This document shows, one piece after another, positions 8,687 to 50,410 of a stretch of DNA of 64,000 nucleotides; the stretch's first letter is position 1, and every line of letters begins with the position of its first letter. A program made the translations under genes and the position numbers. The stretch lies in the sequence record OZ196285.1; one strand, written 5' to 3'. Below the pieces are notes generated by a model that had not been told where the DNA came from, did not search any database, and was given only the letters and a program-made list of their open reading frames with translations.

Positions 8687-9016
8687 ATGTTTGGAAGAAA
8701 AGATTACAATCGCTACCTTGTTTGTATTCAATACAAGAGTGGTGCAAAGAACGCGTTTTGGGTAACACGTTTTTCTATTGATAGAACTGGCCGTACCAAT
8801 CACTACATGTGGAATGAAGCTGAGTGTCCGTTTAGTGAGACGCAGAATCTCGATAAGCTGAGAGATTTAGCGACGACCGTATCGCAGCGTTTAGACTCTG
8901 CTAATGTATTGATGTGTGATAGTGTAGTTTCACTGAACGTTGATGATGTCAGCAGCGTATGGACGGTTTGTACAGTTGAAGGTAAAGACGGTGATGAACC
9001 AGAGCCGAAAAAATGA
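8687..9016 (+). CDS. hypothetical protein
   Basis: 109-aa ORF in operon. Confidence 0.7.
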   Translation: MFGRKDYNRYLVCIQYKSGAKNAFWVTRFSIDRTGRTNHYMWNEAECPFSETQNLDKLRDLATTVSQRLDSANVLMCDSVVSLNVDDVSSVWTVCTVEGKDGDEPEPKK

Positions 9017-9189
9017 TCATCGTATTGCTTTATTTGACAGTAGCATTTATGTTCTATGCGTACTGCGTAGTTTATGATTACGTTAAAGTGGGTTGGACAG
9101 GTGGTCAGAAATTTCCACTTAATTGTTTGGCGACGAGCCAACCACAACAACGACGGACGAAGATGCCGTTCGTGACGTTGCTCACTTGA
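9013..9189 (+). CDS. small membrane protein (58 aa)
   Basis: Manual translation MIIVLLYLTVAFMFYAYCVVY...; ATGA overlap upstream, TGATG overlap downstream. Confidence 0.55.
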   Translation: MIIVLLYLTVAFMFYAYCVVYDYVKVGWTGGQKFPLNCLATSQPQQRRTKMPFVTLLT

Positions 9190-9707
9190 TGAATTCTACT
9201 GAGACGGAGATGGTTAATTTCTGGCTTAAAGATTTCGAACGGTCGACTTATCTGTATCGTGACTTGTGGTATGGTATTGCTACACGCAATCGATATGGGG
9301 ATGCGTCAGTCAAGCGACTTGACAGTGAACTGCCGTTCTGTGATGTGATTGCGCAACTCGTTAAATCTGAGGCGCGTATTCGTATCAGCGTCAAAGGTAC
9401 ACTTACAAATCAGTGGCGTCGTGCATATGGCATTACACTAGCTGAACAATGTGGTTACGTTGCACCGCCTGCTGAATCAAAAGGCGAAGACGAGGTAGAA
9501 CAGATTGAAATTGACGGTGACGCGCCAATTGCACCTGCTGAGTACGATGTTCTAATCGAGAGTGCGCGTGAATGTAAGCGTGCTAAACATGCACTACTGA
9601 ATCTTACAAAGATCGGTGACCCGATCACTAAGAGTCAGCGAACTGAAATCAACAATCTAGTTATCGATTGTAAAATGCAACTGCTCGAAGACGAGCTGAA
9701 CAAATAG
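9189..9707 (+). CDS. hypothetical protein, paralogue of lipoprotein 24395..25117
   Basis: ELPFCDVIAQLVK, ECKRAKHALLN, LVIDCKMQLLEDEL shared. Confidence 0.7.
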   Translation: MNSTETEMVNFWLKDFERSTYLYRDLWYGIATRNRYGDASVKRLDSELPFCDVIAQLVKSEARIRISVKGTLTNQWRRAYGITLAEQCGYVAPPAESKGEDEVEQIEIDGDAPIAPAEYDVLIESARECKRAKHALLNLTKIGDPITKSQRTEINNLVIDCKMQLLEDELNK

Positions 9708-9715
9708 GAAATATC

Positions 9716-10192
9716 ATGACTGAACCAACACATGGCTATGCAGCCAACCCAACTAATGCTGAAGTGAATGAACTTTTAAAAGAGCTTGGTTGTGAGAAAA
9801 CAGAATCGTTGCACAATGTACATGGCGTTCATGACGTTGAGATTGATCGACTTATCGAAGCAACTATGAGTGATGACGAGCCTACGTTCGAACGTCACAA
9901 CGACCCATTAGTGACTGAGGCGCAAAAGATCAGATTTCATTTGGCTAAAGCAAACGCGACTGAAGTGAATTATCGTGGTAAAACATACTACTTCATTGGC
10001 AAAGATCCACTTAATTCTGAATACGTGCATATTCTTGACCCGACCAATCAAGTGTCTACGCGTGTTCCTGCGTCACATTGCTTCACTGGTAAAGAATTCA
10101 ACGAAGCAACTGCTATTTCTAGACGCTATCCTGGTCATCTATCAGTGAGCGACATGGCTCGACTGATTCGAGAAATCCGAAACGAATCATAA
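9716..10192 (+). CDS. hypothetical protein
   Basis: 158-aa ORF, AGGA RBS. Confidence 0.7.
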   Translation: MTEPTHGYAANPTNAEVNELLKELGCEKTESLHNVHGVHDVEIDRLIEATMSDDEPTFERHNDPLVTEAQKIRFHLAKANATEVNYRGKTYYFIGKDPLNSEYVHILDPTNQVSTRVPASHCFTGKEFNEATAISRRYPGHLSVSDMARLIREIRNES

Positions 10193-10212
10193 ACGTGAAT
10201 TGTTGTCTGTTC

Positions 10213-10218
10213 TAAATA
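10213..10218 (+). promoter_or_regulatory. T4-like late promoter (TAAATA)
   Basis: Same hexamer precedes tail-fibre genes and endolysin in this window. Confidence 0.6.
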
Positions 10219-10249
10219 TGAATATATTTCTAACATTAGGACATTCAAC

Positions 10250-10807
10250 ATGCCAATGCAATCATCGGGTGCAATCTCGCTTGACGACATCCAAAATTAT
10301 TTTGGCGGTGAGCCATCTATAGGCATCACTGAGTATTATCGCGGCGGTGCATATGTACCTGACATTACAGAAAACGCAGGTATTCCTACTAGCGGTCTAA
10401 TCGACATGAATGACTTTTACGGTTCAATGCGTCTGACTGCGGTGAATACTAGTCGCGATACAACTATCTCAACAACTGCATCACGTTCGACTGGTTACAG
10501 TTCAACATGGAGCACTGGTTACACTTCATCATGGGGTACGGCTCGCGGTACTTCGCGTGGGACAAGCCGCACCACTTCTTGGACAACGACGTGGTCAACA
10601 GAGACCACATGTAGTAAAGGTGGGTGTGGTAGTCGAAACACTTCGCGCACCACTTCACGCGGTACGAGTTACACGACTTCATGGACGACTTCATGGACGA
10701 CTTCACGCAGCACTTCGCGAAATACGTCTCGTGCAACTACGCGCGATACCACATACTCATACGATACGACATACACGACATCGTGGGATACACAAACACC
10801 GGAATAA
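10250..10807 (+). CDS. Ser/Thr-repeat protein with phage adhesin/fibre-tip-like N-terminal domain
   Basis: N-terminal SSGAISLDDIQNYFGG...EYYRGG...IPTSG.I.MNDFYG; residues 66-183 are T-S-[RWY]-x tetrad repeats around CSKGGC. Confidence 0.8.
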   Translation: MPMQSSGAISLDDIQNYFGGEPSIGITEYYRGGAYVPDITENAGIPTSGLIDMNDFYGSMRLTAVNTSRDTTISTTASRSTGYSSTWSTGYTSSWGTARGTSRGTSRTTSWTTTWSTETTCSKGGCGSRNTSRTTSRGTSYTTSWTTSWTTSRSTSRNTSRATTRDTTYSYDTTYTTSWDTQTPE

Positions 10808-10809
10808 TC

Positions 10810-11031
10810 ATGACAGAACAGCGAATAGAACATCTTGAAAATGAAGTCAAACGTATGAGCGCCGAATTGTCGCGTGCAAACGACATCATTAAAAACTTGA
10901 ATGAAAGTCAGACTCTATTAATGGAGACGATCATTGAACACATCGCGTCACTTGAAGCTGAACGAGATCAGCTTCTTCGGAGTTATGACGATGGTATGAA
11001 GTCAATAATTAACAAATACAAAAACGAATAA
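10810..11031 (+). CDS. small coiled-coil protein
   Basis: Heptad pattern; ATG 10810 after upstream TAA. Confidence 0.65.
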   Translation: MTEQRIEHLENEVKRMSAELSRANDIIKNLNESQTLLMETIIEHIASLEAERDQLLRSYDDGMKSIINKYKNE

Positions 11032-11038
11032 GGGACGA

Positions 11039-11899
11039 TTGCACGTGAACAATAACAACTTTCGTAGTGAAATGACGGGCTTTAATAATGCATGTCGAAT
11101 TGGTAAGTTAGTGTTGAACGATACGCGACCCTTTGAATTGTGCATGAAAGCTATTGACGAACTGCAACACAACGGCATTGATTGTCAATTTGACATGTCA
11201 CATGATGATGGTGGTGATGTATCTGCGGCAGAGTGGGTATCTCAGTTGCGTTCATTTTGTATTCGATATCTAAACATCGATGTTCAATGTCGTGCATTGA
11301 TTGCATCGTTCTACGACAACAAATCTGACCTTGATATTAATTTCTCAAGCAACTCAGTTGACAAGTACAAACTGAGTTCACTTGCTCCTTGTTTCGAGCA
11401 TTACAAGCGCGTTGTATTTCTTGGTGGCACTAATATCTTACACGACCAGATGGATCTCGATAAGATTGAGTACATCATGAATGCAGACTCAAGTGTCGTC
11501 ATTAAGCCACACCCACTAACTAACGTCAGTGACATGAAAATGTTGAGTGAGCGATTTGGGAGTGAGCGAGTGCTGTCGAACAAGATCAATGGTGTTCAAT
11601 TGCTTTCACAGTGCGAACACGCGTGGGTGCCATCTAGTTCTGAAATGTGGTTCACGTGTGTTATGAATAACATTGATTTTGATATCATCACGCGTGATGC
11701 CGTTGCGCGTCGTGGGCTGTATTACCCGATGATCAATGCAATGAATGTGATTCATGCCGACACTGGTATTGACAAAAAGACAATCGCGTCCAAGATTATC
11801 ACGTCTCCATCATCGGGGATATACACATCTTACCATTCATTCAAATACTGTCATGCGAATTTTATCGAAAACGTTCGCATGTGTGGTGGTGACATATGA
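11039..11899 (+). CDS. KpsS/KpsC-like (capsule-synthesis family) glycosyltransferase-like protein
   Basis: VVIKPHPL motif followed by LLSQCEHAWVPSSSE, matching the GT-B HP...vNS pattern. Confidence 0.55.
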   Translation: MHVNNNNFRSEMTGFNNACRIGKLVLNDTRPFELCMKAIDELQHNGIDCQFDMSHDDGGDVSAAEWVSQLRSFCIRYLNIDVQCRALIASFYDNKSDLDINFSSNSVDKYKLSSLAPCFEHYKRVVFLGGTNILHDQMDLDKIEYIMNADSSVVIKPHPLTNVSDMKMLSERFGSERVLSNKINGVQLLSQCEHAWVPSSSEMWFTCVMNNIDFDIITRDAVARRGLYYPMINAMNVIHADTGIDKKTIASKIITSPSSGIYTSYHSFKYCHANFIENVRMCGGDI

Positions 11900-12543
11900 T
11901 TAACATAGACATACATACGTACATCTACAGTGTTCATGATTTAGACCAATTGCGGGTGCTCAGTAAGTCGTTTGAACTTACTCACCCTGACAACGATGGT
12001 GGTGTAATTTGCATAGTAGCCGATGAAATAGAAGTGTCGTCGTTGCCTGAAATTCAGAACGTTCGATATACGAAAACATACCCTACGGGTCGGTACATAT
12101 TCTTTTCCGTTGAACAGTTCTTCATGAACAAGTTGTATTCTCTAGTCGCAAGAACAAAAGACACTTGCGGGTTGTTGTCGTATTATCATGATGATGAGAA
12201 GAATGACTTTCGCATCGTCAACGACATTGAGGCTGATCTACCACACGAGTTCAGTAATGTGAATTTCACAATCGAGCCGCACGCAGATCGTCTAATGTAT
12301 TACAAGATTCTGAAGCACATGCGTGATGTTGTGACGTTGAATACTCGCAAGTTTAATCCTAGCGATACGTCTCAAATCAACAGCATATACACGCTTACGT
12401 TTCCGTGGGAAATGTATTTCAATGTTTTGCGACAATGCGACGGGGTTTCTGAATCGTTTAAATCCGATGTAGTGTTTAACTGTAAGCGGTTTTCACATAG
12501 TATATGGTACAGATACAGCAATATTCTGAACATAGGTGAGTAA
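11896..12543 (+). CDS. hypothetical protein in modification operon
   Basis: 215-aa ORF, ATGA overlap. Confidence 0.75.
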   Translation: MINIDIHTYIYSVHDLDQLRVLSKSFELTHPDNDGGVICIVADEIEVSSLPEIQNVRYTKTYPTGRYIFFSVEQFFMNKLYSLVARTKDTCGLLSYYHDDEKNDFRIVNDIEADLPHEFSNVNFTIEPHADRLMYYKILKHMRDVVTLNTRKFNPSDTSQINSIYTLTFPWEMYFNVLRQCDGVSESFKSDVVFNCKRFSHSIWYRYSNILNIGE

Positions 12544-12545
12544 TT

Positions 12546-13247
12546 ATGAAACAGATACACGAAGTGGCATTGGTGTCTGGACTTGATAGCATTGTTCTTT
12601 ATGAAATGTTGTCGAAAAATAACCCAAACATATTGCCCGTTTATTTCAAGTGGGGGTTTGATATTGACGATGCAGAAATTGCCAAGCTCCCTGAAGGGAC
12701 AGTCATTCATGAAATCCCCGAATACTTAAAATTCGATGTTGATATCGGTTCGCGTGAGTGTGTCAATCTTGATGGGCGTGACACGATTATGATGAACATG
12801 ATCATGCACATTTATAAGCCAAGTGTGATTTACAAAGGCACGATACTGAACGATGAATCATATGTCGAGTCGAATTTCATGTTCACTCAAAAGATCGCTC
12901 ATACATGGAGTTTAATCAACCGCAAAACGACGGAGATTAAGCACCCGTTCCAAACAAAAAGTAAGCGCGATGTGATTATGCTTGCTGAGGCGATGGACAT
13001 CAACCCATTAGATTTTCAATATTGCTACAATGAATCGGGTAATTGTGGGTATTGTAACAAGTGTCGGATGACGCGCCTATTGAGTATGTACACGTCGAAT
13101 CCAGATATCGATTTCTTGAATAAATTCAAGGCTGAGTGCGAAGACGAAACAGTTCGTCTCACCGGTAATTACATAACACAGACCGATGATGTCGTCGGTG
13201 AAATAACTCGACAAATTGAGGGAAAATATGAACATACAATATCATAG
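12546..13247 (+). CDS. QueC-like PP-loop ATP pyrophosphatase
   Basis: VSGLDS PP-loop, HPF...SKRDVI, CY...CGYCNKC zinc motif. Confidence 0.75.
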   Translation: MKQIHEVALVSGLDSIVLYEMLSKNNPNILPVYFKWGFDIDDAEIAKLPEGTVIHEIPEYLKFDVDIGSRECVNLDGRDTIMMNMIMHIYKPSVIYKGTILNDESYVESNFMFTQKIAHTWSLINRKTTEIKHPFQTKSKRDVIMLAEAMDINPLDFQYCYNESGNCGYCNKCRMTRLLSMYTSNPDIDFLNKFKAECEDETVRLTGNYITQTDDVVGEITRQIEGKYEHTIS

Positions 13248-13905
13248 CATCGGCGGGCGACACTTAATTGTGATCGATGATGCATTCACATCCGATGAAT
13301 TGAAGTTCATCACAGATACAGTAGACGCGATATCAGAGTCTTTGTGGCAAGAAGGTCACGATGACAACTTGTTGCGGTATAGTGGCATTCACGAACTGAA
13401 CGTAATAAACGGGACCGACGATCCGAACAGTGTCATCAAAGGCGACTGTGTGTTTCTCAACGCTCTAGGTGCTCCTCACAAAAAGATTTGCTCTATTGTA
13501 GACAATGTGGTGTATAGCGCGTTCTCAACTAAAAGCATCGTCACGTCCGAAGATCGTGAGCGCATCTTCTTTGACAAGAACGAGTTTTTTTGCCGAGTTT
13601 TACGTTATATGCCGGGATATTACGACCAATGTGCAGATGACGATTTGTTCTTGCATACTGACATTTCAACTGGCGTGATGTTCACCCCATTCGAAAACAC
13701 AATCGATCATCAATGCACGTATTATTACGAAGATGATAAATTCGAAACTCCCGTGCTTACACTTGAACATAAACCCGGTCGGTTGGTTGTGTTTGATGGT
13801 CGTATTGTTCACGCACCTAATCGATGTGACAACTCGACTCGTTACGCGATGTCGATGCACAACGATCACGATTTGCAAAAATATCTAGGTGCATTTAGTG
13901 AGTGA
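13228..13905 (+). CDS. 2OG-Fe(II) oxygenase
   Basis: HTD...KPGRLVVFDG.IVH...TRY facial triad and 2OG Arg. Confidence 0.8.
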   Translation: MNIQYHSIGGRHLIVIDDAFTSDELKFITDTVDAISESLWQEGHDDNLLRYSGIHELNVINGTDDPNSVIKGDCVFLNALGAPHKKICSIVDNVVYSAFSTKSIVTSEDRERIFFDKNEFFCRVLRYMPGYYDQCADDDLFLHTDISTGVMFTPFENTIDHQCTYYYEDDKFETPVLTLEHKPGRLVVFDGRIVHAPNRCDNSTRYAMSMHNDHDLQKYLGAFSE

Positions 13906-14797
13906 TTTAATATCGGATACTGCCGATAATATGATTCACGTGTATGATGATGAACTATCGGCAGCTCAGTGGTACTTCGGCAGTAGAACTTGCGATTTCT
14001 ACTTATACGGTATTAAAGAATTACGTGCTTCTCTATCGCAGTACCCGTTCATAGATGTTCAGTCACGCTCGGATGGTGATTTGATACGAGTGGGTGAGCC
14101 TGCAATTACGATTACAATTCGTCGTGCTAGTGTATTGAAGTATGGGAATATGATCGAAACGTTGTTGTATAATACCGTATGGTATCGTTCGACAGTCGGT
14201 ACTATTTTGATAGGCATGAAAGACACGTTGATTCGTAATGGGTTTAGTGTGTATTCAGCATTCCCTCAGACAGGTCGCGCTAGTGTGAATCATGAGCAAA
14301 CGCTGGTTGCAAATGAAATGTTCGAGCGTGTGTTTTATAAACTCGGTACAGAACTACGTTCTGTTGCAACACACAATGAAATATTGATGACATCTGAGCG
14401 CTTTTGTTTGCAGAATTATCGAAGTGTGATGGCAGATACTTATGATATTGCGAACTTTTGCGAACTGTGTCATGAACTCGATTATACTGGCAACATCATG
14501 ATTGATTCATCGCCTATAATTGAAAACATCGATTACGTATTATCTCACACGAACAACACGATTAGTCAAGTTGAATCGATTACTATCAACGAGTGGCATG
14601 AACTAGTCGAACATTATAGTGGGAATAAACGTCTGACGTTCGGCATAGGAAGTTGTTGTTTCACTAACATTTCGCGTGATACATTTGGGCTTGTCTTCAA
14701 AACATGCGCAATTGAACGCAATGGAAAATGGATCGGTGTGAGTAAACAGACATCAAATAAAAAAACACACAATGGTTATGTGGGTAAGTTATCATGA
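13889..14797 (+). CDS. divergent nicotinate/nicotinamide phosphoribosyltransferase-fold protein
   Basis: TGRAS, THNE, ADTYD, FGIGS, ISRDTFGLVFK align to NadV motifs DFGARG, EHS, MDSYD, FGMGG, DRDTQRFAMK. Confidence 0.65.
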   Translation: MHLVSDLISDTADNMIHVYDDELSAAQWYFGSRTCDFYLYGIKELRASLSQYPFIDVQSRSDGDLIRVGEPAITITIRRASVLKYGNMIETLLYNTVWYRSTVGTILIGMKDTLIRNGFSVYSAFPQTGRASVNHEQTLVANEMFERVFYKLGTELRSVATHNEILMTSERFCLQNYRSVMADTYDIANFCELCHELDYTGNIMIDSSPIIENIDYVLSHTNNTISQVESITINEWHELVEHYSGNKRLTFGIGSCCFTNISRDTFGLVFKTCAIERNGKWIGVSKQTSNKKTHNGYVGKLS

Positions 14798-15798
14798 GAA
14801 AATATTGCATTGCGCCTTTTGCATCACCTGCGATTACGCCAGATGGATTTAAGGTATGTTCATATCCCGGTCAGAAAGTATATGACGACATTTCATTCTG
14901 GAATAGTGAAGAGATAATGGAAATGCGTCGAACGATTCGTGAGGGCGGTACACCTGAATCTTGTATTGAATGTCGCAAAGGGCGAGACGGGTTGGTATGC
15001 TCGGCAAATCCAGATGACGTTCGCGATGAATACGTCCCGTTGAATTTTAAAAACTTGTTTATTGCACGCAGTAATAAGTGCGATATGGCATGTGAAATGT
15101 GTTCTTCTACAATATCACACACGTACGACAAGGTGCATGGTGATGGGAGCGTGGGTGTAATCGAGAACAATATCGATTTGACCCCCTATCTCCACGAGAC
15201 AACACACGCAGCAATCAGCGGCGGTAACCCTGTGCTTGATAATAAGCTTCTTGATATCATCGACGGATTAGACGCTGACCGTCTGCGCTCTATGTTCTTC
15301 ACTAGCAACGGAAGTGTATTCCCTAAGTCATTCATTGATTCGATCAAGCGTCTATCAAAGACTGATATCAGCTTGATATTTTCAATTGATGGGCCCAAAT
15401 ACGTAAATGAAGTCGTGAGGGAAAGGAGTCGTCAGCAACGATTCTACGATACATTTCAACGCGTGATGCAGGATGTCATCGAACACGAAAATATATTCAT
15501 GTGTATTGAGTTCACCGCAACAAACAAGACGGTATCGCATCTTTCTGATTTGTATGACGAAATGATGTTTATGCTATCGACGGATGAATTGTCGAGAGTG
15601 AAATTCATTTTCAACGTGTGTAGCTCGCCAGTACATCTTTCTGCAATGCATCTTACGGCAGAGCAAGAAAACTCAATCACGAAGCAATTGTCGTATTTTG
15701 AGCATGTACTCAGAACCGCGCCGACTGAATTGGCTAGTGTGATGCATAGTAGACTGTACGATTTTGCAGAACGTTACAACGAGCAGCGAATACTATAG
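14794..15798 (+). CDS. radical SAM protein with N-terminal SPASM/twitch-like Cys cluster
   Basis: CDMACEMC, SGGNP, FFTSNGS, FSIDG; N-terminal YCIAPF...CS...CIEC. Confidence 0.9.
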   Translation: MRKYCIAPFASPAITPDGFKVCSYPGQKVYDDISFWNSEEIMEMRRTIREGGTPESCIECRKGRDGLVCSANPDDVRDEYVPLNFKNLFIARSNKCDMACEMCSSTISHTYDKVHGDGSVGVIENNIDLTPYLHETTHAAISGGNPVLDNKLLDIIDGLDADRLRSMFFTSNGSVFPKSFIDSIKRLSKTDISLIFSIDGPKYVNEVVRERSRQQRFYDTFQRVMQDVIEHENIFMCIEFTATNKTVSHLSDLYDEMMFMLSTDELSRVKFIFNVCSSPVHLSAMHLTAEQENSITKQLSYFEHVLRTAPTELASVMHSRLYDFAERYNEQRIL

Positions 15799-16884
15799 AA
15801 TAATAGTTCGTTCGACCATAGAGGCGAGCAAAGGTGACACTGTTTTCAGTTCATCGATGTTTGCCTTTTTTATTGTCTCGTGGCAAAACTCTACCCACTT
15901 GACGTGTTCATATCTTGAATTTCGTTGTATTCCGACTAATTCATTATAGGCGCGGCGAGTTGTCATGTTGTTTTGCAACGCCTCGTACTTTTCAACCATT
16001 GCGTTTATGAATTCGGGTGGTGCATTAAACAGAGACATGCGCTCAGGCATAACAATAAATCCAACCCCGAGTTCAATATCATCGTGTAATTCTGAAAGCT
16101 CATCAAATCGTTCGATGTTGTACATGGTCATTGTTGACAATAATGACACATCAATATGTGTGGATAGATTCTTCGAATCGTTTATGAATGTGTTCAAACG
16201 ATCATAGTTTATAAACTTTCTCTGAAAGTTGTTTACTGATTCCACCCCGTCGATTGAAATTACTAGTCGAACATGTTTGCCGCTGAAGTGGAGCTGCATT
16301 AGTCGTGTGAATATACACGACCCGTCACGCATCTTGCTAGTATTGCCGTTTGTTACTATGGTGATTTCTTCGGCTCGGCTTCTGTCAAGCGCGTCAAAGA
16401 TTTCAACCCCTCTTTCCATGTCTTGGATATTCCCGCCTAATATGCGAATCGATTCTACGTTGGTGGATTGTTCGATTGCAAACAAACACTCATCTACGTT
16501 GTCGATTTTATTCGTCGTCTTGCTATACGTGCGTGAATATGCTCGGCTGAACTCATCACCGCACATAATACAAGCACCTGAGCACTCATTAGATGGGTAT
16601 AAAATCAAATCGCGCACTTCAGATATCTTCATTTCTAGTTTAGCTTCAACGTTTCGTTGAAATTGAATGTGCATGTTTGTAGCGATACACGATTGGCACG
16701 CTTGGGGTAATGATTTGACATCGTGGTCGACCATTGATTGTCGAACTTGAGTGATTGTGTCGTGGTTAAGCGCGTCGTGTATGTTGTCAGCTTCATATCG
16801 TATGTATGACATGCAGCATGAGCTATAAGACTGAGCAGCGATACCGAAGTCAGTGAATGGCGCAGAGCAAAGTGGTTTATTCAT
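15793..16884 (-). CDS. radical SAM protein with N-terminal SPASM/twitch-like Cys cluster
   Basis: CSGACIMC, LGGN, TNGN, ISIDG; LCSAPF...CCM...CQSC. Confidence 0.88.
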   Translation of the reverse strand: MNKPLCSAPFTDFGIAAQSYSSCCMSYIRYEADNIHDALNHDTITQVRQSMVDHDVKSLPQACQSCIATNMHIQFQRNVEAKLEMKISEVRDLILYPSNECSGACIMCGDEFSRAYSRTYSKTTNKIDNVDECLFAIEQSTNVESIRILGGNIQDMERGVEIFDALDRSRAEEITIVTNGNTSKMRDGSCIFTRLMQLHFSGKHVRLVISIDGVESVNNFQRKFINYDRLNTFINDSKNLSTHIDVSLLSTMTMYNIERFDELSELHDDIELGVGFIVMPERMSLFNAPPEFINAMVEKYEALQNNMTTRRAYNELVGIQRNSRYEHVKWVEFCHETIKKANIDELKTVSPLLASMVERTIIL

Positions 16885-16926
16885 TATGTTTAATCTCAAT
16901 CTATGTTCGTCTATAATTATTGTGAG

Positions 16927-16932
16927 TATTTA
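16927..16932 (-). promoter_or_regulatory. late promoter TAAATA for minus-strand radical SAM
   Basis: TATTTA on + strand in 44-bp divergent gap. Confidence 0.55.
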
Positions 16933-16943
16933 GGAGTAAAAAA

Positions 16944-17882
16944 ATGAACAAATTAATATCATTCAATCGAGTAGACTCGTCATATGACTATCTAGTCGAG
17001 AACAATCTAGCGAATGTTCCAACTGTGATGCAATCTCTGTACAACATGATGACTACACTAGAAATTCCCGTTCAGTACAACGCGTCTGTGTCTAACAGTC
17101 AGAACTTGCTAGTGGGCGTTTGCTTTATGCAGCATTCGTACGAGAATGATCGCGAACACTTCAACCGGGTGATTGACAATATCGCTCTCACTCGGCGCGT
17201 ATTGTTAGTTTTCAATTCATGGCAAGTTCGACAATCAATCGAATGGTTTAGGAGAGTGCGACATGAGCTAGACAAACGCACTGAGCGCGTTCTTAGTAGG
17301 TTGTTTGATGCAAGCGAAGCATTTGTACCCGTGTACTTCAATCACGATGTGAGTGCGATAGAGAGCGCGTATGGGTATAGAGTGTTGCCGTACAATCCGT
17401 GTACATTCATTGATTCTTCGTCATACGGGACAATGACGACACACAAAGACCGAAAGGTTGTGTATGGCGAACTAGATTTGAATTTGGCATCAGCATTTAC
17501 AAGCAGATTTGATATCCCAACCGACGAATTTGTTATGTTCAATTTTCGCAACGTGATTGATGAGCGCGATCTTGTTGAGAATCACTACTCGCGGTCGTGG
17601 TTTGTATTGATGCCAAGTCACATAGGTGATACAGCAGGGATGGGGTTCTGGCGTTCCAAAGTACAGCACGCGATTAACGTTGGATCTATCATCATCACGG
17701 ATGAGCATGAGGCGAAACATCTAGGTGAATCGTTCGCGTATACGTACTCTCAACTTGTAACTAAGAGCGACGACGAGCTACAACGCATCGCAGAGGAGCA
17801 AAGATTAGAGTTCGAACATAATCTCTCACGAAGGGCTGCATTGACACAATTCAAACTTACTATAAAGAGTATCGAGTTATGA
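16944..17882 (+). CDS. putative GT-B glycosyltransferase-like protein
   Basis: C-terminal YSRSWFVLMP...WRSKVQHAINVGSIIITD resembles GT-B donor-binding segment; weak. Confidence 0.4.
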   Translation: MNKLISFNRVDSSYDYLVENNLANVPTVMQSLYNMMTTLEIPVQYNASVSNSQNLLVGVCFMQHSYENDREHFNRVIDNIALTRRVLLVFNSWQVRQSIEWFRRVRHELDKRTERVLSRLFDASEAFVPVYFNHDVSAIESAYGYRVLPYNPCTFIDSSSYGTMTTHKDRKVVYGELDLNLASAFTSRFDIPTDEFVMFNFRNVIDERDLVENHYSRSWFVLMPSHIGDTAGMGFWRSKVQHAINVGSIIITDEHEAKHLGESFAYTYSQLVTKSDDELQRIAEEQRLEFEHNLSRRAALTQFKLTIKSIEL

Positions 17883-19204: not shown

Positions 19205-19751
19205 CGTGAGCAAGTGCCGATGATTGATTGTTGTGCCTGTCTACGTGCAAGCAGCATATCTCGGGGAAGTTCGTTTTGATATCATTTATGTTCTCGATTC
19301 GGTCGTCGATGAAGAATTCAATATCATGTCGTTTCTGTAGATCTTTTATGTACACTGACTTGTTTTCATGGAATTCGATACTGATCAGCTCGTCTATCAT
19401 GTGCGGGAACAATGCACTTAGATTGAATTGTCTATTGCACCATGCAGTTCGACTCCACCCGAACTTGGTAAGCGCGATTATCTTGTGCGTCTTTGAAAGT
19501 CGCTCTAATGTCGAGTACGCGTCTTCGTATGCAGGCATATACTTTGCACTGTCGTGTTCAGTGTATGCAGCTATGAGCTTTCTTGTTTCGTCTGTTGATG
19601 TGTTCTTAAACATTTCGTGTGCGTGTATGTCAGTGTTGATCAGTGAAAGGTCGTTGAGCTTGTGTTGGAGACCAAGCTGAGTCATGAAGAATGGGAGATT
19701 AGATTTCCAGTTCAGAAGTACGCCATCCACATCAATTATAAGGGTTTTCAT
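19188..19751 (-). CDS. HAD-family phosphatase, 5'(3')-deoxyribonucleotidase-like
   Basis: IDVDGVLLNW, LTK, FIDDRIEN. Confidence 0.85.
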   Translation of the reverse strand: MKTLIIDVDGVLLNWKSNLPFFMTQLGLQHKLNDLSLINTDIHAHEMFKNTSTDETRKLIAAYTEHDSAKYMPAYEDAYSTLERLSKTHKIIALTKFGWSRTAWCNRQFNLSALFPHMIDELISIEFHENKSVYIKDLQKRHDIEFFIDDRIENINDIKTNFPEICCLHVDRHNNQSSALAHATAFL

Positions 19752-19788
19752 TATAAATACTCATAGGGTTTTAAAGTGAGTATTTATA
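19752..19788. promoter_or_regulatory. inverted repeat with TATAAATA late promoters on both strands
   Basis: TATAAATACTCA 19752-19763 / TGAGTATTTATA 19777-19788. Confidence 0.7.
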
Positions 19789-19936
19789 GCATTCGAAAAA
19801 TAAATGAAAAAAATGTTAGAATTCTATTGACAGCCCTTCTAAAAAATGTAATTATGTACACATCAGCTCAACACTGAAACGAAAAACAAAAACTTAACGA
19901 TAACAAACAATCAATCATCAAAAAAGGAAACATCCT

Positions 19937-20128: not shown

Positions 20129-20146
20129 TCATTAACGTGATTACCG

Positions 20147-20178
20147 AAGCAACGTTCAAATCGAACGTTGCTTTTTTT
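20147..20178 (+). terminator. Rho-independent terminator
   Basis: AAGCAACGTTC/GAACGTTGCTT followed by T run. Confidence 0.85.
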
Positions 20179-21807: not shown

Positions 21808-21836
21808 TGTGACGTAGATCACGCAAAACGCTAACA

Positions 21837-22234: not shown

Positions 22235-22237
22235 TTA

Positions 22238-43605: not shown

Positions 43606-46600
43606 TTATAAGCGGAAAAGTTTCTTCCACCACGGCTTTTTAAGCTCTTGTACTTCGTTCTGAAGCGTATTGACAGTTTCGTTAAGCTCTTTAATCGATT
43701 CGATTATAAGACCGCTTAGATTGCCGTACGCGACTGATTTGATGCCATCCGCGTCGTTATTATCGGCGCGAACCGCTTCAGGCAGAACTTTCTCAACTTC
43801 TTGAGCAATCACACCCGTTTCACGCGTTGTCTTGTCTTCGTGCAATGACAATTTCTTGTCGTAAACATACCCGCCAAGTTGCATGATCTTCTCTAGTGGA
43901 TTTTCGATGCGCTCGATGTTGCTTTTCAGGCGAATATCAGAGTAAGCAGTTACGTTGCCAGTTGCAGTAAAGTGCCCTGCATCATCGAACGTAAATCGAG
44001 TCGTTGATCCGTCACGAACATACCAGTTACCAATACCGCTGTTCAAGTCAGTGTACATGTGAGAGCCATTACAGAAGAACTCGACATCATCACTTGAACC
44101 GAAACGCATGATATCGTTATCAGCCAAATCGATTGCTGTACGAACACTCAACGTTCCATTAACCGTCATGCTACCAGTTATCGTACCGCCAGTTAGCGGT
44201 AAGTATCCCGCGCCTGACAGAGGAGCAAAACGCGCATCAGCTTCAGCTTCTGTGTAGTAACGACCATCATGTGTATGCGAATCGTTAGCAACTGCAACAG
44301 TGATCGAAGCGTTCGCTGAACCATCGAACAAGACTGAACCACTAGCATCACCTGCTAATGAAATCGTACGGGCTGTATTCAACTTAGTTGCTGTTCCCGC
44401 ATTTCCGTTCAGTGCACCTTGGAATGTGTTTGCTAACACCGTACCAGTAGACGCTTGAAATTTGAAACTAGAAGTGTCATACAAGGCGTTACTGTTGTTA
44501 TGCCAAACTACAGGATAGAACGTAGATGACGTTGAGTTAGAAACAGTTACTTTGCTTGCAGCATCTAATATTCCAAGATATTTCGCACTCAGTGCAGTAG
44601 TACCCTCGTAAATCGAGTTCGCGTACAGTTGACTGAATCTCCATGTACTTGTACCTAGAGCACCCACCCCATTCGAATGTGGCAATAGGCCATCACTCGT
44701 TATACGCACATATGCAGTTGTTGAATTACTTCTACCGGTCATTTGACGATATGTACTTGAATCGTTAATGCCCATGTAATTGGTGTGCGCGTGACTATCG
44801 TTAGCAACAGTAACGGTCAGAGTTTTGTTAGCTGATCCGTCAATCGAAACTGAACCACTTACATCACCGTTAAGCGTGATCGTACGAGCTGTTGTCCATT
44901 TATCAGCATTCGGATGATAGTTGTCTGCAAACAATCTTTCCCATGATGACCATGTCCCGTTATTTTGACCGCGAACATACCAAGCGTTGGTTCTCCAGTC
45001 ACTTGCTTGCTGCGTCTGCCACGAAACACTATATGAGTTCGTTTGAATCGCGTGATCTTGTCCCGAAGGTGCGTTACTTGCATCGGCTCCAAGATAACGA
45101 ACTGAGAACCCGCCAACATCACCTACTGTGTCTGCGTTGACTGTTGATTTATCAGCCAAGAACGCATCAAATCTATCATGCGCGTGACTATCGTTAGCAA
45201 CAGTAACGGTCAGAGTTTTATTAGCTGATCCGTCAATCGAAACTGAACCAGTCGCATCGCCACTTAACGTGATCGTACGAGCTGTTGTCCATTTATCAGC
45301 ATTCGGATGATAGTTGTCTGCAAACACACGCTGTGTGTTGTTTGCATAAATCTCGCCCTCTGCATACGTTGCGTCGCGAGTAACCCAGAAAGAACGTCGG
45401 TTGATAACATGACCAGTCGTATCACTCGCAGTTGAATGCAACACACTGAATGAATCATTATCGTCATTTGCAGAGATTACAACCGCAGCATGACCGTTAT
45501 CAGGGCCCCACAATGAAAGACAGTTGTTCGAACCTGGGATTAAACCATCGCCCGGGTTTGTGCTTCTGGTAATGTACGCGCCAGTATCGAATAGTAGCGA
45601 ATTAACACCCAATATAAGCGAACCCGTCATTGTATCGCCTGATTTAGACACGTAGCGAGCGTTCGATTCTGCTTCTGTGTAGTAACGACCATCATGCGTG
45701 TGCGAATCGTTAGCAACAGTAACGGTCAGCGTTTTATTAGCTGATCCGTCAATCGAAACTGAACCACTTACATCACCGTTAAGCGTGATCGTACGAGCTG
45801 TTGTCCATTTATCAGCATTCGGATGATAGTTGTCTGCAAACACACGCTGTGTGTTGTTTGCATAAATGCTACCAGTCATGTACACGTTATTGCTTTCTCG
45901 TGCACCGCTCATTACAAGATGGTCGGCTCCCCCAGTTCTACGCCACAACTGCCAGTCGTTCACGTCACCATCATACTTCAAGAAAGCACCATGCTGTCCG
46001 CTATCTTCAGTCATACGCAATTCAGAATCGGTGTTTGCAGTTGCATTCAAGTGAAGTAATGAGTTTGCTTTAGTGATCGTCAGATTACCCGTCATCGAAT
46101 CACCAGACTTAGAAACGTATCCCGCACCATTAATAGGCGCGAATCGTGCATTAGCTTCTGCTTCTGTGTAGTAACGACCATCATGAGTGTGCGAATCGTT
46201 CAGAACAACAACTTCTAGTGTTTCGTTTTCAGAACCATCGATTGAAACTGAACCAGTTGCATCGCCTGAAAGACTTAGTGTTCTTGCTGTTGTCCATCTA
46301 TCCGCATTCGGATGGTATGTGTCGGTGAAGAACATGCGCCAGTCTGCCCATGTGCTTTCATCAGTCGCTACACGAGTGCCAACGTTGCCGTTATCACCGA
46401 ATGCGAATTGCAAACTACGACCACCACTCGATCCCTGCCATGCATCGAAGTTCATCACTCGGTGGTATGTGCCACCTCCATGAGTAAAGCCGTCAATCGT
46501 GTTGTACTTGAAGTGATACTCAACACCATCACCGTAGTCGCTTGGTAGATAATCAACACTTCGGCTATCTTTGCGCGGTAGAACATCAGCTCCACCCGCC

Positions 46601-47418
46601 CCTTGACCAACTCTCATGTATCGAGTATCGTGCGTATGCGAATCGTTTACAACTGAAACGATCAGTGTTCGATTAGACGAACCATCGATTGAAACTGAAC
46701 CAGTCGCATCGCCACTTAACGTGATCGTACGAGCTGTTGTCCATTTATCAGCATTCGGATGATATGCATCGTGAAATACATCATTGCCCTTGTACGTGAT
46801 GCTCATCGCGTTCACGTCAAACGTCGAGCCATCACTACCGACACGAAATGCGTTGTCTGTTCGAACAACTGACGATCCGAAGTAAATACCGCTCGTGAAA
46901 TCAAGCTGATCGTTGATTCTCAGCCATGCATCATATCCGCGCATAACAGTTTTATCGTTAATCGATAGATCATCGACGAACAATTTAAACTCATTGCTGT
47001 ACAGAGAAACACGCGTATTTGATGTACTACCTTCACGAAACGAAACGAACCCACCATCATTGACTAAAAACCAGTTTTGAGCATTAGAGCCTGAGTTATC
47101 AGTCAGCGTTAGTCGTGGCGAGCTACCCTGTATTTCAATATCATTCGCAGCAACAGTCAATTTACCAGTCATCGTGTCACCATCGCGCTTCATGTACCCC
47201 GATGGTACAGTATCAGCAAAACGCGTGTCTGCTTCTTCTCTGGTATATGCTGACGTACTGCCTCCGTTACCAAGCTCACTCGGTAACGGAGTGTCGTGTT
47301 CTGTGAAGATTTTATAGCCGCTGTAGCGAATTGTCTCGCCTTGTGTATCAAAGCGTAAATTCCCCCCATGCCATACTATGTTACCGCCAATCGCAGTAGT
47401 TGACTTTAATTCTGCCAT
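43606..47418 (-). CDS. long tail fibre with C-terminal S74 autocleaving chaperone
   Basis: Six WTTARTI.L.GD..GSVSIDGS...NDSH.H modules; SDIRLKSNI...GVIAQEVE. Confidence 0.9.
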   Translation of the reverse strand: MAELKSTTAIGGNIVWHGGNLRFDTQGETIRYSGYKIFTEHDTPLPSELGNGGSTSAYTREEADTRFADTVPSGYMKRDGDTMTGKLTVAANDIEIQGSSPRLTLTDNSGSNAQNWFLVNDGGFVSFREGSTSNTRVSLYSNEFKLFVDDLSINDKTVMRGYDAWLRINDQLDFTSGIYFGSSVVRTDNAFRVGSDGSTFDVNAMSITYKGNDVFHDAYHPNADKWTTARTITLSGDATGSVSIDGSSNRTLIVSVVNDSHTHDTRYMRVGQGAGGADVLPRKDSRSVDYLPSDYGDGVEYHFKYNTIDGFTHGGGTYHRVMNFDAWQGSSGGRSLQFAFGDNGNVGTRVATDESTWADWRMFFTDTYHPNADRWTTARTLSLSGDATGSVSIDGSENETLEVVVLNDSHTHDGRYYTEAEANARFAPINGAGYVSKSGDSMTGNLTITKANSLLHLNATANTDSELRMTEDSGQHGAFLKYDGDVNDWQLWRRTGGADHLVMSGARESNNVYMTGSIYANNTQRVFADNYHPNADKWTTARTITLNGDVSGSVSIDGSANKTLTVTVANDSHTHDGRYYTEAESNARYVSKSGDTMTGSLILGVNSLLFDTGAYITRSTNPGDGLIPGSNNCLSLWGPDNGHAAVVISANDDNDSFSVLHSTASDTTGHVINRRSFWVTRDATYAEGEIYANNTQRVFADNYHPNADKWTTARTITLSGDATGSVSIDGSANKTLTVTVANDSHAHDRFDAFLADKSTVNADTVGDVGGFSVRYLGADASNAPSGQDHAIQTNSYSVSWQTQQASDWRTNAWYVRGQNNGTWSSWERLFADNYHPNADKWTTARTITLNGDVSGSVSIDGSANKTLTVTVANDSHAHTNYMGINDSSTYRQMTGRSNSTTAYVRITSDGLLPHSNGVGALGTSTWRFSQLYANSIYEGTTALSAKYLGILDAASKVTVSNSTSSTFYPVVWHNNSNALYDTSSFKFQASTGTVLANTFQGALNGNAGTATKLNTARTISLAGDASGSVLFDGSANASITVAVANDSHTHDGRYYTEAEADARFAPLSGAGYLPLTGGTITGSMTVNGTLSVRTAIDLADNDIMRFGSSDDVEFFCNGSHMYTDLNSGIGNWYVRDGSTTRFTFDDAGHFTATGNVTAYSDIRLKSNIERIENPLEKIMQLGGYVYDKKLSLHEDKTTRETGVIAQEVEKVLPEAVRADNNDADGIKSVAYGNLSGLIIESIKELNETVNTLQNEVQELKKPWWKKLFRL

Positions 47419-47488: not shown

Positions 47489-50410
47489 TTAATTAAACAG
47501 TTTACTGTATATTTTTTTGTACCACGGAGTTTCAAGTCGTTCAACTTTTTCATTAAGCTCCTTGATTGATTCTACTAACAAGCCAATCATGTTTCCGTAA
47601 GCTACAGATTTGATGCTATCGGGGTCGTTAGCGTCAACGTGTACCGCTTCAGGCAGAACTTTCTCAACTTCTTGAGCAATCACACCCGTTTCACGTCTCG
47701 TCTCGCTCTCGCTCATAGAACGCTTCTTATCGTACGTGTAGCCACTAAGCTGTTTGATCTTCTCTAGTGGATTTTCGATGCGCTCGATGTTGCTTTTCAG
47801 GCGAATATCAGAGTAAGCAGTTACGTTGCCAGTTGCAGTAAAGTGTCCTGCATCATCGAACGTAAATCGAGTTGTCGAACCGTCACGAACATACCAGTTA
47901 CCGATGTCACTATTCAAGTCAGTGTACATGTGGGAGCCATTACAGAAGAACTCGACATCATCACTTGAACCGAAACGAAGAATGTCATTATCTGCTAAGT
48001 CAATCGCAGTGCGAACACTCAACGTACCGTTCACCGTCATACTACCAGTTATCGTACCGCCAGTTAGCGATAAGTATCCCGCACCGTTAATAGGTGCGAA
48101 TCGTGCATCAGCTTCAGCTTCTGTGTAGTAACGACCATCATGTGTATGCGAATCGTTAGCAACTGCAACAGTGATCGAAGCGTTCGCTGAACCATCGAAC
48201 GAGACTGAACCACTAGCATCACCTGCTAAACTGATTGTTCTTGCTGTTGCAAGCTTCGATGCGCTTGATGCGTTGCCAATGAACGACGCTGCTGTTACCG
48301 ATCCACGAAATTCCCAGTTGTTTGAGTTGTATTTGTTTCTAGCCGTCCAGTTATCATCAGAACCTGCTCGGTTAAACAGTGTGATGTAGTCTGAGCCAGA
48401 GCCAGAGCCAGTCGGAGTACCGTCACCGTTGTACTCAAGACCACCACCATGAGTTGAAGACTGACCCACATAAATTCGACCAGTACCTTGCGACCCACCC
48501 ATTGCTTGAATATTAGCCACGCCCGCATCGTCACAAATCACATTTAGTGTTGATGATGTGCCTGCATCGATAGTCATACTACCCGTCAGCGATCCACCCG
48601 TCAGCGGTAAGTATCCCGCACCATTAATAGGTGCGAATCGTGCATTAGCTTCTGCTTCTGTGTAGTAACGACCATCATGTGTATGCGAATCGTTAGCAAC
48701 TGCAACAGTCAAAGTCTTGTTCGCTGAACCATCAATTGAAACTGACCCACTAGCATCACCTGCTAAACTGATTGTTCTTGCTGTCGCCCATTTGCTTGCC
48801 GTCGTTGCGTTACCAGTCAATGCACCACTGAATTTTGTTGCAAAAACAGTCCCAGACGATCCTTCAAACTGAACACCAGTATGACTATACATTAAGCCAT
48901 TAACGTCAACAGTCATCGGGTATTTACCGCTGAACGTCGTTGTGATATCAACTCGATCTGCTAATGCTGCATGAGTTGCTTCGTTCACATCGACTGTGAT
49001 ACTCGCGTTAGCTGAACCGTCCCATGATACTGAGCCAGTTGCATCACCAGTAAGACTTAATGTTCTTGCAGTTGTCCATTTATCAGCATTCGGGTGATAG
49101 TTGTCCATGAAAATACGCTGAGATGTTGCGTCGGACGTTGTATTACTCGTATTGTTTTTATACGCATAATGTAGTTTATCAATGTTGCTAGTATCCGTCC
49201 ATAATGAATGTCTGAACTTAGACCCCCCGTTATGACCCCACTGAATCCAGTTGATGAAATCATTACTAGGTGCCCCAGAAACATTAGATGCCGACCCGGT
49301 TCTAAATTCGTCAGTTTGCGCGTTCCAGTCTGCGTTTAACGGGTCGATTCTAGTATGTAAGTGACTATCGTCTGCAACTACGACATTGATACTTGCATTA
49401 GTTGATCCGTCAATCGAAACTGAACCACTAGCATCACCAGTAAGACTCAACGTTCTTGCAGTAGCCCATCGACTTGATGTTGAAGCATTACCACTTAATG
49501 CGCCGTATACCGTATTAATGTACGCACTACTAAACCTCCAAGAAGATGTACCCAAAACACTGCCACCAGAAGTGCCAGATTTATAGGGAAGCAAACCGGA
49601 TGCAGGTGTACAAATATAAGTATTTGCATTAGTCTTACCACGAATTTGATAATAAGACCCAGATGGGCTTAATGTATCACCCCGAGCATATCTAGTATCA
49701 TGTGTATGGCTATCATTTGCAACTACAGTTGTAATCGTAGTAGTTTTATTCCCAGTGCCATCCACGCTCATTGATGCCGAACCCGTAACATCGCCCGTTA
49801 ATGTAGTTGTTAATGTTCTCGCAGTCGTCCATTTATCAGCATTCGGGTGATAGTTGTCCGCAAACACGCGTTGCGTGCCACTTGCGTAGATGTTACCACC
49901 AACGACAATATGTAACGGGTGCGACGTTGAACTCGTGTCTTCGAAAAACAAGGCTTGACCCGACGTATTCGGCAGATTACCATCAGTTATTTCGTGACGA
50001 ATTCTCGCGTTCTGTGTTGAGTCGGATACGAAATTAATCGTTGCATCTATAGCTGTACTAGTCGATGTAAGCGACAAGAATGGAGAATTCCCGTATGCTT
50101 CAATTCCGTATTCAAGAACACGCAATTTGCTCCCTTTCAAGTCAAGAACGTTGCTTGAAGATGCATCGAAACGAGCGTCGTAATCAGACGCGCCGCCTGA
50201 GATATGAAAGTCGATGTATCTACCGACTTCCATAACCCCGTTTGTTCCTATGACTGGAATCATTTCAGTATCTGGCGTTCCATCAGTCCCGAAAAGACCG
50301 CCAGTCGCAACTACAGCACCGTTTAGCGTATTCAAGATCACATCGTTTAAAGACGTAACCCCTGTTACGTCTATACTACCGTAAACCGTAGTAGGGCCTA
50401 ATTTAGCCAT
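47489..50410 (-). CDS. tail fibre with C-terminal S74 chaperone
   Basis: Five copies of same module; near-identical C-terminus to 43606..47418; TATAAATA 50444-50451. Confidence 0.9.
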   Translation of the reverse strand: MAKLGPTTVYGSIDVTGVTSLNDVILNTLNGAVVATGGLFGTDGTPDTEMIPVIGTNGVMEVGRYIDFHISGGASDYDARFDASSSNVLDLKGSKLRVLEYGIEAYGNSPFLSLTSTSTAIDATINFVSDSTQNARIRHEITDGNLPNTSGQALFFEDTSSTSHPLHIVVGGNIYASGTQRVFADNYHPNADKWTTARTLTTTLTGDVTGSASMSVDGTGNKTTTITTVVANDSHTHDTRYARGDTLSPSGSYYQIRGKTNANTYICTPASGLLPYKSGTSGGSVLGTSSWRFSSAYINTVYGALSGNASTSSRWATARTLSLTGDASGSVSIDGSTNASINVVVADDSHLHTRIDPLNADWNAQTDEFRTGSASNVSGAPSNDFINWIQWGHNGGSKFRHSLWTDTSNIDKLHYAYKNNTSNTTSDATSQRIFMDNYHPNADKWTTARTLSLTGDATGSVSWDGSANASITVDVNEATHAALADRVDITTTFSGKYPMTVDVNGLMYSHTGVQFEGSSGTVFATKFSGALTGNATTASKWATARTISLAGDASGSVSIDGSANKTLTVAVANDSHTHDGRYYTEAEANARFAPINGAGYLPLTGGSLTGSMTIDAGTSSTLNVICDDAGVANIQAMGGSQGTGRIYVGQSSTHGGGLEYNGDGTPTGSGSGSDYITLFNRAGSDDNWTARNKYNSNNWEFRGSVTAASFIGNASSASKLATARTISLAGDASGSVSFDGSANASITVAVANDSHTHDGRYYTEAEADARFAPINGAGYLSLTGGTITGSMTVNGTLSVRTAIDLADNDILRFGSSDDVEFFCNGSHMYTDLNSDIGNWYVRDGSTTRFTFDDAGHFTATGNVTAYSDIRLKSNIERIENPLEKIKQLSGYTYDKKRSMSESETRRETGVIAQEVEKVLPEAVHVDANDPDSIKSVAYGNMIGLLVESIKELNEKVERLETPWYKKIYSKLFN

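Follow-up and report, generated by a model that had tools for sequence, protein, structure and literature searches.

A threonine/serine-rich protein of Vibrio phage F86 with two mirror-complementary arms of cationic and aromatic residues: a candidate tail-fibre-associated ribbon

The gp38 adhesins of the T2/T6/S16 type (PF05268) are small and built of modules, of which the N-terminal one is conserved and the C-terminal one variable and unusually repetitive, and in the phages bearing them the N-terminal domain attaches at the tip of gp37 (PMC3157838, PMC12032242). For S16, gp37 has been predicted to contain an S74-type chaperone domain, and S74-type intramolecular chaperones as well as the fibre chaperones of Alteromonas phages display beta-hairpin 'tentacles' (PMC10579305). 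Here, a protein of 185 amino acids (aa) from Vibrio phage F86, a KVP40-like phage of the T4 type, is compared with these systems. Its gene lies at 10250..10807 of the window, which is the whole analysed stretch of 64,000 nucleotides (nt) from the 228 kb record OZ196285.1 (window position = record position - 124000). Bases 9000-13000 of the window are 100 % identical to the F86 record. The best explanation, to which a probability of roughly 0.55 is assigned, is a two-module, late-expressed, tail-fibre-associated protein, in which two C-terminal arms fold back on each other as a ribbon.

With respect to the pairing of side chains, three further systems are of interest. Thrombospondin type-1 repeats and the WSXWS motif of cytokine receptors represent disulfide-rich, three-stranded eukaryotic domains of ~60 residues, in which the ladders are closely spaced and stack without interruption, one strand contributing the Trp and another the Arg. 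Designed tryptophan-zipper and cation-pi beta-hairpin peptides are synthetic and comprise 12-16 residues. The Thr-array faces of insect antifreeze proteins and the single-layer beta-sheet of OspA are known for regular Thr ladders on a flat beta surface and for an exposed sheet without a conventional hydrophobic core, respectively.

The small F86 open reading frame (ORF) is a genuine gene, since its product matches phrog_30374 (E 1.4e-27, residues 1-154) and syntenic orthologues in the same frame are present in KVP40 (KVP40.0254), 6E35 (6E35.1a), QD01, PVA8, D484 and D479. In the deposited record OZ196285.1 it is unannotated and three short or overlapping coding sequences (CDS) are listed there; the records of D484 and D479 likewise contain short or overlapping CDS instead of the gene. 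Some public records label the orthologues 'cell wall mannoprotein', which is an automatic composition match and misleading (PMC3468402). Homology to yeast-type mannoproteins beyond composition was not found, the sole serine-rich NCBIfam profile reaching 18.6 bits vs a cutoff of 650. In practical terms, three deposited genomes miss the gene and others bear the name of a yeast protein. For the whole protein, Pfam yielded no family at E<=10, and the searches of PDB and NCBIfam gave composition-level noise, including designed 'pizza' propellers (E 0.05) and the serine-rich profile just mentioned. The protein is organized as follows:

10250..10807, + strand: CDS, open ORF, 185 aa plus stop
10250..10435, + strand: N-domain, residues 1-62, conserved module of a large phage protein family
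10436..10609, + strand: arm 1, residues 63-120, Thr/Ser tetrads with R69, R79, Y83, W87, Y91, W95, R99, R103, R107, W111 and W115
10610..10630, + strand: turn C-S-K-G-G-C-G, residues 121-127, centred on G124
10631..10804, + strand: arm 2, residues 128-185, with the partners (at position sum 248, see below) R133, R137, Y141, W145, W149, R153, R157, R161, R165, Y169 and W179

Residues 63-185 comprise 43 Thr and 26 Ser (56 % together), 12 Arg, 1 Lys, 7 Trp and 6 Tyr, and the net charges of the two modules are opposite (-6 for the N-domain, +7 for the hairpin part). A protein search with this arm region alone gave no match. The original prediction, which had been made from the DNA letters, is confirmed in its observation, which is even stronger than stated, and partly supported in its interpretation. 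All residues of its series are correct (R79 Y83 W87 Y91 W95 R99 R103 R107 W111 W115, then C121-SKGG-C126, then R129 R133 R137 Y141 W145 W149 R153 R157 R161 R165), and the series also includes R69 before this run and Y169, Y171, Y175 and W179 after it, which had been missed. That almost all other positions are Thr or Ser was an overstatement, since these two residues occupy only ~71 % of the non-Arg/aromatic positions. The 12-nt periodicity of the DNA is present, though mostly diverged: an exact repeat exists only at 10673-10705 (2.8 copies), and the remaining copies are 60-77 % alike. The gene DNA contains no inverted repeat. The diverged copies and the missing inverted repeat therefore indicate an old, selected protein repeat and not recent slippage or an RNA stem, and a cause at the nucleic-acid level was rejected.

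To relate the two arms, all fold registers were scanned, each pair register being given as the position sum of the paired residues. At sum 248, 11/11 paired large residues of F86 join a cation to an aromatic residue (R69/W179, R79/Y169, Y83/R165, W87/R161, Y91/R157, W95/R153, R99/W149, R103/W145, R107/Y141, W111/R137 and W115/R133), without a single like-with-like pair. The pattern, which had been called mirror-symmetric, is actually mirror-complementary. For the fold proposed previously, at sum 244, the pair arithmetic holds, but the register lies one tetrad off the best one; with R69/Y175 added it contains 8/11 cation/aromatic and 3 like-with-like pairs. Permuting the Arg/aromatic labels within each arm resulted in P = 0.001 at sum 248 and 0.002 across all registers within +-12. 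The sum of 248 equals the protein length (185) plus the number of the first residue behind the N-domain (63); therefore the last residue lies opposite residue 63, at the start of arm 1, and both arms have precisely the same length.

This end-fixed rule, found in F86, was then applied without fitting to the six orthologues of 168-177 aa. Cation/aromatic pairs amounted to 9/9 in KVP40, 12/12 in 6E35, 11/11 in D484, 13/13 in D479, 9/9 in QD01 and 9/9 in PVA8, and no like-with-like pair occurred in any of them, while registers one tetrad off gave 3-8 such pairs in F86 and the orthologues. Per protein, the shuffle P at the end-fixed register lies between 0.0004 and 0.003, these seven values not being independent because the orthologues are related. 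The arms are equal in all orthologues, at total lengths of 168-185 aa. F86 shows both features that define the tetrad-hairpin subfamily of KVP40.0254 and its relatives, namely equal Thr/Ser arms and the end-fixed cation/aromatic complementarity.

For the analysis of covariation, the orthologues were lined up by the distance from the N-domain. Rungs on the same face are either cation/aromatic or Thr/Thr (or Ser/Thr). In F86, the rungs of this face that are not cation/aromatic are mostly Thr/Thr (11), and the opposite face is built of Ser/Thr, Ser/Ser and Gly/Ser. The phase of the large rungs in the group of F86, 6E35 and D484 is shifted by two residues against the group of KVP40, PVA8, QD01 and D479, and this shift affects both arms together. 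Furthermore, individual rungs are flipped in orientation: KVP40 differs by three such flips from QD01 and by three from D479, and F86 differs from 6E35 by one. No orthologue contains a like-with-like rung. These paired flips and phase shifts can be viewed as the protein equivalent of compensatory base changes, and the predicted antiparallel pairing of the arms is well supported by such covariation.

A parallel pairing of the arms looks favourable in F86 as well, where a direct offset of 12 yields 14 complementary against 2 like pairs and one of 42 yields 12 against 1. This appearance is due to the arrangement of Arg and aromatic tetrads in blocks. The parallel offsets always leave some exceptions, the best offset obeys no rule, and in a control with the mirror complementarity kept they were not significant (P 0.11-0.90); parallel pairing was therefore rejected. 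The alternating blocks and the same two offsets would also fit a multi-stranded meander or solenoid, in which Arg tetrad blocks pack on aromatic ones, and a low-confidence AlphaFold2 model (see below) drew five strands. However, in KVP40 and QD01 single Arg and aromatic tetrads alternate without blocks, yet both are perfect in the global mirror register, which argues against such a meander. In addition, the tetrad spacing continues uninterrupted from block to block and Gly also occurs away from the borders, so that, together with the non-significant direct offsets, this arrangement appears extremely improbable.

Between the arms, K-G at the exact centre of the turn is common to all orthologues. 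The Cys pair, previously thought to cap the hairpin by a disulfide, occurs only in the lineages of F86, 6E35, D484 and D479 and is absent from KVP40, PVA8 and QD01. Since C121 and C126 are also not opposite each other at sum 248, a disulfide would be optional at most.

The arms have distant relatives in metagenomes. Here, P0017 and P0019 contain 6/6 and 5/5 cation/aromatic pairs at the predicted register, and P0008, with a spacing of 10 rather than 4 residues, has 10/11 pairs. In a stricter count, which considers only large residues with Thr/Ser surroundings, P0002, P0005 and P0009 show 5-7 complementary pairs and P0008 shows 5, all without exception, at registers two residues (P0002, P0005 and P0009) and 1-2 residues (P0008) off the predicted one. 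The arms of P0002, P0005 and P0009 match in length (~60/60, 60/60 and 40/42 residues) and flank a globular domain of ~80 aa. This domain is homologous to a loop insert in the N-domains of P0015, P0016 and P0018 (hhalign 92 %, E 6e-7); a profile comparison was needed, as BLASTP showed only weak likeness of the P0002 tip domain to the P0018 insert (E 0.34). Because the domain is also used as a loop insert, its two ends are adjacent, as the tip of a hairpin requires.

The complementarity shows only that arm 1 is antiparallel to arm 2. It would therefore also be compatible with an intermolecular pairing, in which two chains swap arms, or in which three hairpins on the trimeric fibre form a six-stranded needle with Ser/Thr/Gly inside and Arg/aromatic residues outside. 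The trimeric state of the fibres, a face consisting only of small residues and the unusual exposure of a lone two-stranded ribbon of ~19 nm fit to this. Nevertheless, a tight K-G turn is located at the exact centre in every orthologue, relatives insert a globular domain with adjacent ends at the turn and the C-terminus returns exactly to the boundary of the N-domain; moreover, gp38 adhesins are monomeric (PMC12032242). Pairing between chains is thus considered quite unlikely, and pairing within one chain is predicted from the sequences of the family.

The first module links the protein to the tail fibre. With residues 1-62, 2750 cluster representatives (clusters at 50 % identity) were found at E<=1e-3 and 280 at E<=1e-10 among 1.84 billion entries, and the matches are almost always located at residues 1-60 of proteins ranging from 61 to >1000 aa. 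Using 107 sequences, AlphaFold2 modelled the N-domain with a predicted local distance difference test (pLDDT) score of 89.8 and a predicted template modelling (pTM) score of 0.71. There is no Pfam model for it, and neither a profile of 107 N-domains against PDB sequences nor a Foldseek search of the model against PDB resulted in a match at E<=10. Fold matches with template modelling (TM) scores of 0.8-0.9 were obtained in BFVD and comprise proteins named phage tail protein, Gp38-domain proteins and the VH7D orthologue. The C-terminal parts of N-domain relatives include the Pfam GP38 adhesin (39-43 bits vs a cutoff of 25) as well as Gly_rich_2, MAM, ConA-like, F5/8-C, beta-propeller, fn3 and Calx-beta domains, so the C-terminal partners within the family are binding modules. 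The N-terminal domain itself, which had been described as adhesin-like, is more likely the conserved attachment module of the protein than its adhesin portion.

Some members of the family deviate from this scheme. P0208, P0237 and P0032 bear C-termini of the Hint/intein type instead of binding modules. In P0160, a giant metagenomic protein of 3391 aa that also bears a choice-of-anchor A domain and DUF11 repeats, there are ten matches to the first half of the N-domain, and this half-motif is thus also a repeat unit in a protein of the cell-surface type. Within the N-domain, residues 5-20 resemble residues 47-59, which suggests an internal duplication.

The neighbourhood of the family was studied in 79 IMG/VR loci (60 distinct), of which 63 contain enough upstream DNA. 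An ORF was counted as S74-ended if its C-terminus matches the S74 chaperone domain of the fibres of F86 itself. Such an ORF is found directly upstream (gap of -17 to +11 nt) in 37/63 loci and within 7 kb upstream in a further 12 (49/63 in total), but downstream in 0/63. The same order, a fibre gene followed by the gene with the N-domain, is present in the contigs of P0004 and P0018 and in three Xanthomonas phages. Among the cases with this order are a baseplate module, where the gene preceding the family member encodes a spike of 2911 aa, and an SU10-like contig, where it encodes an S74 fibre of 1600 aa. Short array-bearing proteins of the P0003 type are also encoded near S74 fibres. As a separate observation, two paralogous genes with the N-domain follow the giant S74 fibre gene of Xanthomonas phage RTH11 (L004 6001-6471 and 7020-7502), whose C-terminal parts are almost identical and whose N-domains have diverged.

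In the window, the corresponding fibre region contains:

43606..47418, - strand: long-tail-fibre distal subunit of 1270 aa (Phage_T4_gp36 6e-54; Peptidase_S74 4e-17, residues 1160-1217), candidate docking partner
47489..50410, - strand: second long-tail-fibre distal subunit of 973 aa (Peptidase_S74 6e-19, residues 867-924), candidate docking partner
42996-43559, - strand: gene after the last fibre gene, encoding a long coiled-coil protein with a transmembrane segment at its N-terminus

The long-tail-fibre block as a whole spans 43606-55227 on the - strand and includes a third protein of 1042 aa with a ConA-like Laminin_G_3 domain. The synteny of the family points to a partnership of the 185-aa protein with the S74-ended fibres of F86, and from the neighbourhoods and domain partners we infer, on good grounds, a role in attachment at the fibre tip.

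Taken together, the following arrangement can be proposed. Residues 1-62 would form a small folded domain, which docks the protein onto the mature fibre tip in the manner of the N-terminal attachment domain of gp38, the docking site being exposed once the autocleaving S74 chaperone is removed. In hundreds of phages, this domain occurs together with fibres bearing such a chaperone at the C-terminus. Residues 63-185 would fold back at the K-G turn centred on G124, and the arms would build one long antiparallel two-stranded ribbon that returns the C-terminus to the N-domain. On one face of this ribbon, Thr/Thr rungs would alternate with cation/aromatic rungs (Arg/Lys vs Trp/Tyr/Phe), and the other face would be covered by Ser/Thr/Gly. 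The result would be a thin stalk with ~58 residues per arm and a length of up to ~19 nm, if straight. In relatives, this stalk would be tipped by a distal domain of globular shape; in F86 and KVP40, the stalk would end in the bare turn and would itself be the exposed part facing the host. The protein would accordingly be expected in the virion, docked on the fibre tip, and may contact a receptor.

This arrangement resembles the gp38 systems in several aspects. Here as well, a small protein combines a conserved N-terminal with a variable, repetitive C-terminal module, the genes of the N-domain family are mostly located directly behind a distal fibre gene with a cleavable chaperone domain at its end, and proteins sharing the N-domain of F86 bear a C-terminal domain of the GP38 type. 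In contrast to gp38, the C-terminal module of F86 would be a Thr/Ser hairpin with Arg/aromatic rungs and not a polyglycine-II sandwich, and the gene after the last fibre gene of F86 encodes the transmembrane coiled-coil protein. In T-even phages, gp38 and then the holin take the position held here by this gene. A gp38-type gene was not found after the fibre genes of F86, and KVP40-type phages have none there.

The tentacles of S74-type and Alteromonas phage chaperones are similar in that a beta-hairpin of variable length emanates from a small body at the fibre tip. Their bodies, however, are alpha-helical, trimeric and S74-related, their hairpins are short and lack Thr/Ser tetrads, and profile searches reveal no relation to the N-domain of F86. 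These chaperones lead to the main rival explanation, in which the protein is a tail-fibre assembly factor or transient cap. Here, the N-domain would sit on the nascent or newly cleaved tip with the hairpin along the shaft, and the protein would be absent from the particle. A place behind the fibre gene, as found in most of the family, is also typical for genes of fibre chaperones, and the separately encoded chaperones of Alteromonas phages embrace the fibre by their beta-hairpin tentacles (PMC10579305); furthermore, literature searches found no proteomic evidence that places the protein in virions. Against this, the partner fibres already possess their own S74 chaperone domain, relatives exchange the hairpin for binding modules of the lectin, MAM, propeller or Gp38-adhesin type and not for chaperone modules, and no profile match to known tail-fibre chaperone families was found in Pfam, PHROGs and NCBIfam. 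An assembly factor is consequently regarded as unlikely.

Several findings weigh against a fibre-tip ribbon, in addition to the dependence among the P values. The F86 protein has no match to the GP38 profile, and no resemblance of its N-domain to solved gp38 structures was detected by sequence or fold. In F86 and all KVP40-like phages, ~33 kb separate the gene from the fibre genes, and it is located beside queC in a region of genes without known function; of the two S74-ended fibre proteins encoded by F86, neither is adjacent to it, the adjacency of 37/63 being that of the evaluable viral contigs. Synteny with fibre genes fits an assembly factor equally well as a virion component, and neither virion proteomics nor structural data for any orthologue were found in the literature. 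For the whole protein, AlphaFold2 gave a mean pLDDT of 44, with 33-41 over the arms, and drew five strands and not one hairpin. We know of no close solved precedent for a free two-stranded ribbon with ~58 residues per arm; oligomers or a packing along the fibre may occur.

Since the alignment for the whole-protein AlphaFold2 run comprised 12 sequences only, its low-confidence model was used neither for nor against the register. The AlphaFold check of the monomer proposed earlier, run here with AlphaFold2, thus delivered no confident hairpin. Of the antiparallel beta-hairpin proposed in the original prediction, the antiparallel pairing is upheld by the complementarity, the flips, the equal arms and the relatives with a domain at the turn. 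The beta conformation is predicted because the even period places the large residues on one face, the arms are rich in Thr and the pairing is antiparallel.

The very low confidence over residues 56-185 would also be expected for a disordered low-complexity array, serving as a flexible linker, as a substrate of O-linked modification or as a 'sticker and spacer' sequence without a fixed register. The Ser and Thr content of 56 % and the mannoprotein label of orthologues point in the same direction. Such disorder, however, would leave the exception-free mirror complementarity, the paired flips, the paired phase shifts and the equal arms unexplained; the label is automatic (PMC3468402), and the serine-rich profile stays far below its cutoff. 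For the O-linked modification suggested before, nothing was found in support, as no glycosyltransferase or other modification gene is located nearby. A disordered array is thus very unlikely.

Tentatively, at slightly less than even odds, the arms may be regarded as a natural, evolvable 'binary-coded' protein duplex. A code of cation vs aromatic residue at every fourth position of a Thr/Ser beta ribbon would set the register of a hairpin of ~120 residues, similar to base pairing in an RNA stem. The length of the stalk could be adjusted by tetrads in both arms and domains could be grafted at the turn, which would constitute a new structural principle for core-less rods and an adjustable stalk at the fibre tip. 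A real ribbon would also be a rare case in which the sequence itself reveals the register of protein secondary structure and compensatory changes serve to verify it, a routine procedure for RNA. It would provide a template from nature for long beta rods that lack a core and are held by cation-pi rungs.

Compared with the systems of paired side chains, F86 shares with thrombospondin type-1 repeats and the WSXWS motif a thin, elongated module, in which neighbouring antiparallel strands would be held by stacked Arg and Trp. It differs from these in that the rungs occur at every fourth residue, with Thr/Thr between them and in either orientation, over ~58 residues per arm. No Pfam match to thrombospondin type-1 or WSXWS was obtained, and the only two Cys of F86 are not conserved in KVP40. 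With the designed tryptophan-zipper and cation-pi hairpins it has in common cross-strand aromatic or cation/aromatic pairs on one face and a preference for Thr in the strands; unlike these, the F86 hairpin is natural, comprises ~120 residues and has its pairing rule kept by compensatory evolution. Thr ladders and a solvent-exposed beta-sheet without a conventional hydrophobic core would be shared with the antifreeze proteins and OspA, but the sequences are unrelated, the topology of the strands and the context are not the same, and nothing suggests ice or mineral binding in F86. In literature searches, no described Arg/aromatic zipper in phage proteins was found.

Beyond the hairpin, the N-domain defines an unannotated protein family whose members are small and very numerous (~2750 clusters at 50 % identity), and in which it goes together with S74-ended fibres and variable binding C-termini. 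This family is likely an overlooked layer of host recognition in marine and soil phages, including KVP40-type vibriophages.

Two signals are located upstream of the gene:

10212..10218, + strand: late-promoter-like heptamer within the 57 nt between the stop of the preceding gene (10190-10192) and the ATG
10238..10241, + strand: AGGA, 8 nt before the ATG, putative ribosome-binding site as judged from the sequence

Of the late TAAATA promoter claimed before, the six-base motif is present at 10213-10218, 31 nt before the ATG, and its function as a promoter is suggestive only. This six-base core is found 31-32 nt before the ATG in F86, 6E35/D484 and KVP40/PVA8/QD01, with differing flanks, and is absent in D479. 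An identical heptamer precedes the F86 fibre genes 0274 and 0277, just past the upstream terminators. Counted over both strands, the window contains the core 29 times, and a single site therefore proves little; its conservation and the parallel to the fibre genes are suggestive evidence for a promoter. The virion role derived from this promoter earlier, or a link to the fibre, is plausible from the neighbourhood of the family, the domain partners and the promoter-like heptamer shared with two fibre genes of F86. Terminator-like hairpins were also noticed in front of genes 0274 and 0277.

Downstream, the local gene order is of the KVP40 type: the 185-aa gene is followed by genes for proteins of ~72, ~280 and ~210 aa and then by queC together with NAD-salvage and radical-SAM genes. 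The neighbouring genes belong to no informative family. The first of them is:

10810..11031, + strand: coiled-coil-like gene, 73 aa, starting 2 nt past the stop; the deposited CDS start at 10681 overlaps arm 2

A gene of ~72 aa is present at the equivalent place in KVP40, QD01 and PVA8, and the true start is probably 10810 and not 10681.

Elsewhere in the window, QueC-like, QueE-like, several radical-SAM and two nicotinamide phosphoribosyltransferase genes at ~12546-26100 and 36347-37216 suggest 7-deazaguanine and NAD-salvage modules as in KVP40. At 28926-32274, the annotated CDS of the large and small subunits of ribonucleotide reductase overlap by 164 nt, and the start of the small subunit may be miscalled. 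Finally, 13 annotated tRNA genes are located among tiny CDS at ~61274-63972 on the - strand, one CDS overlapping a tRNA.

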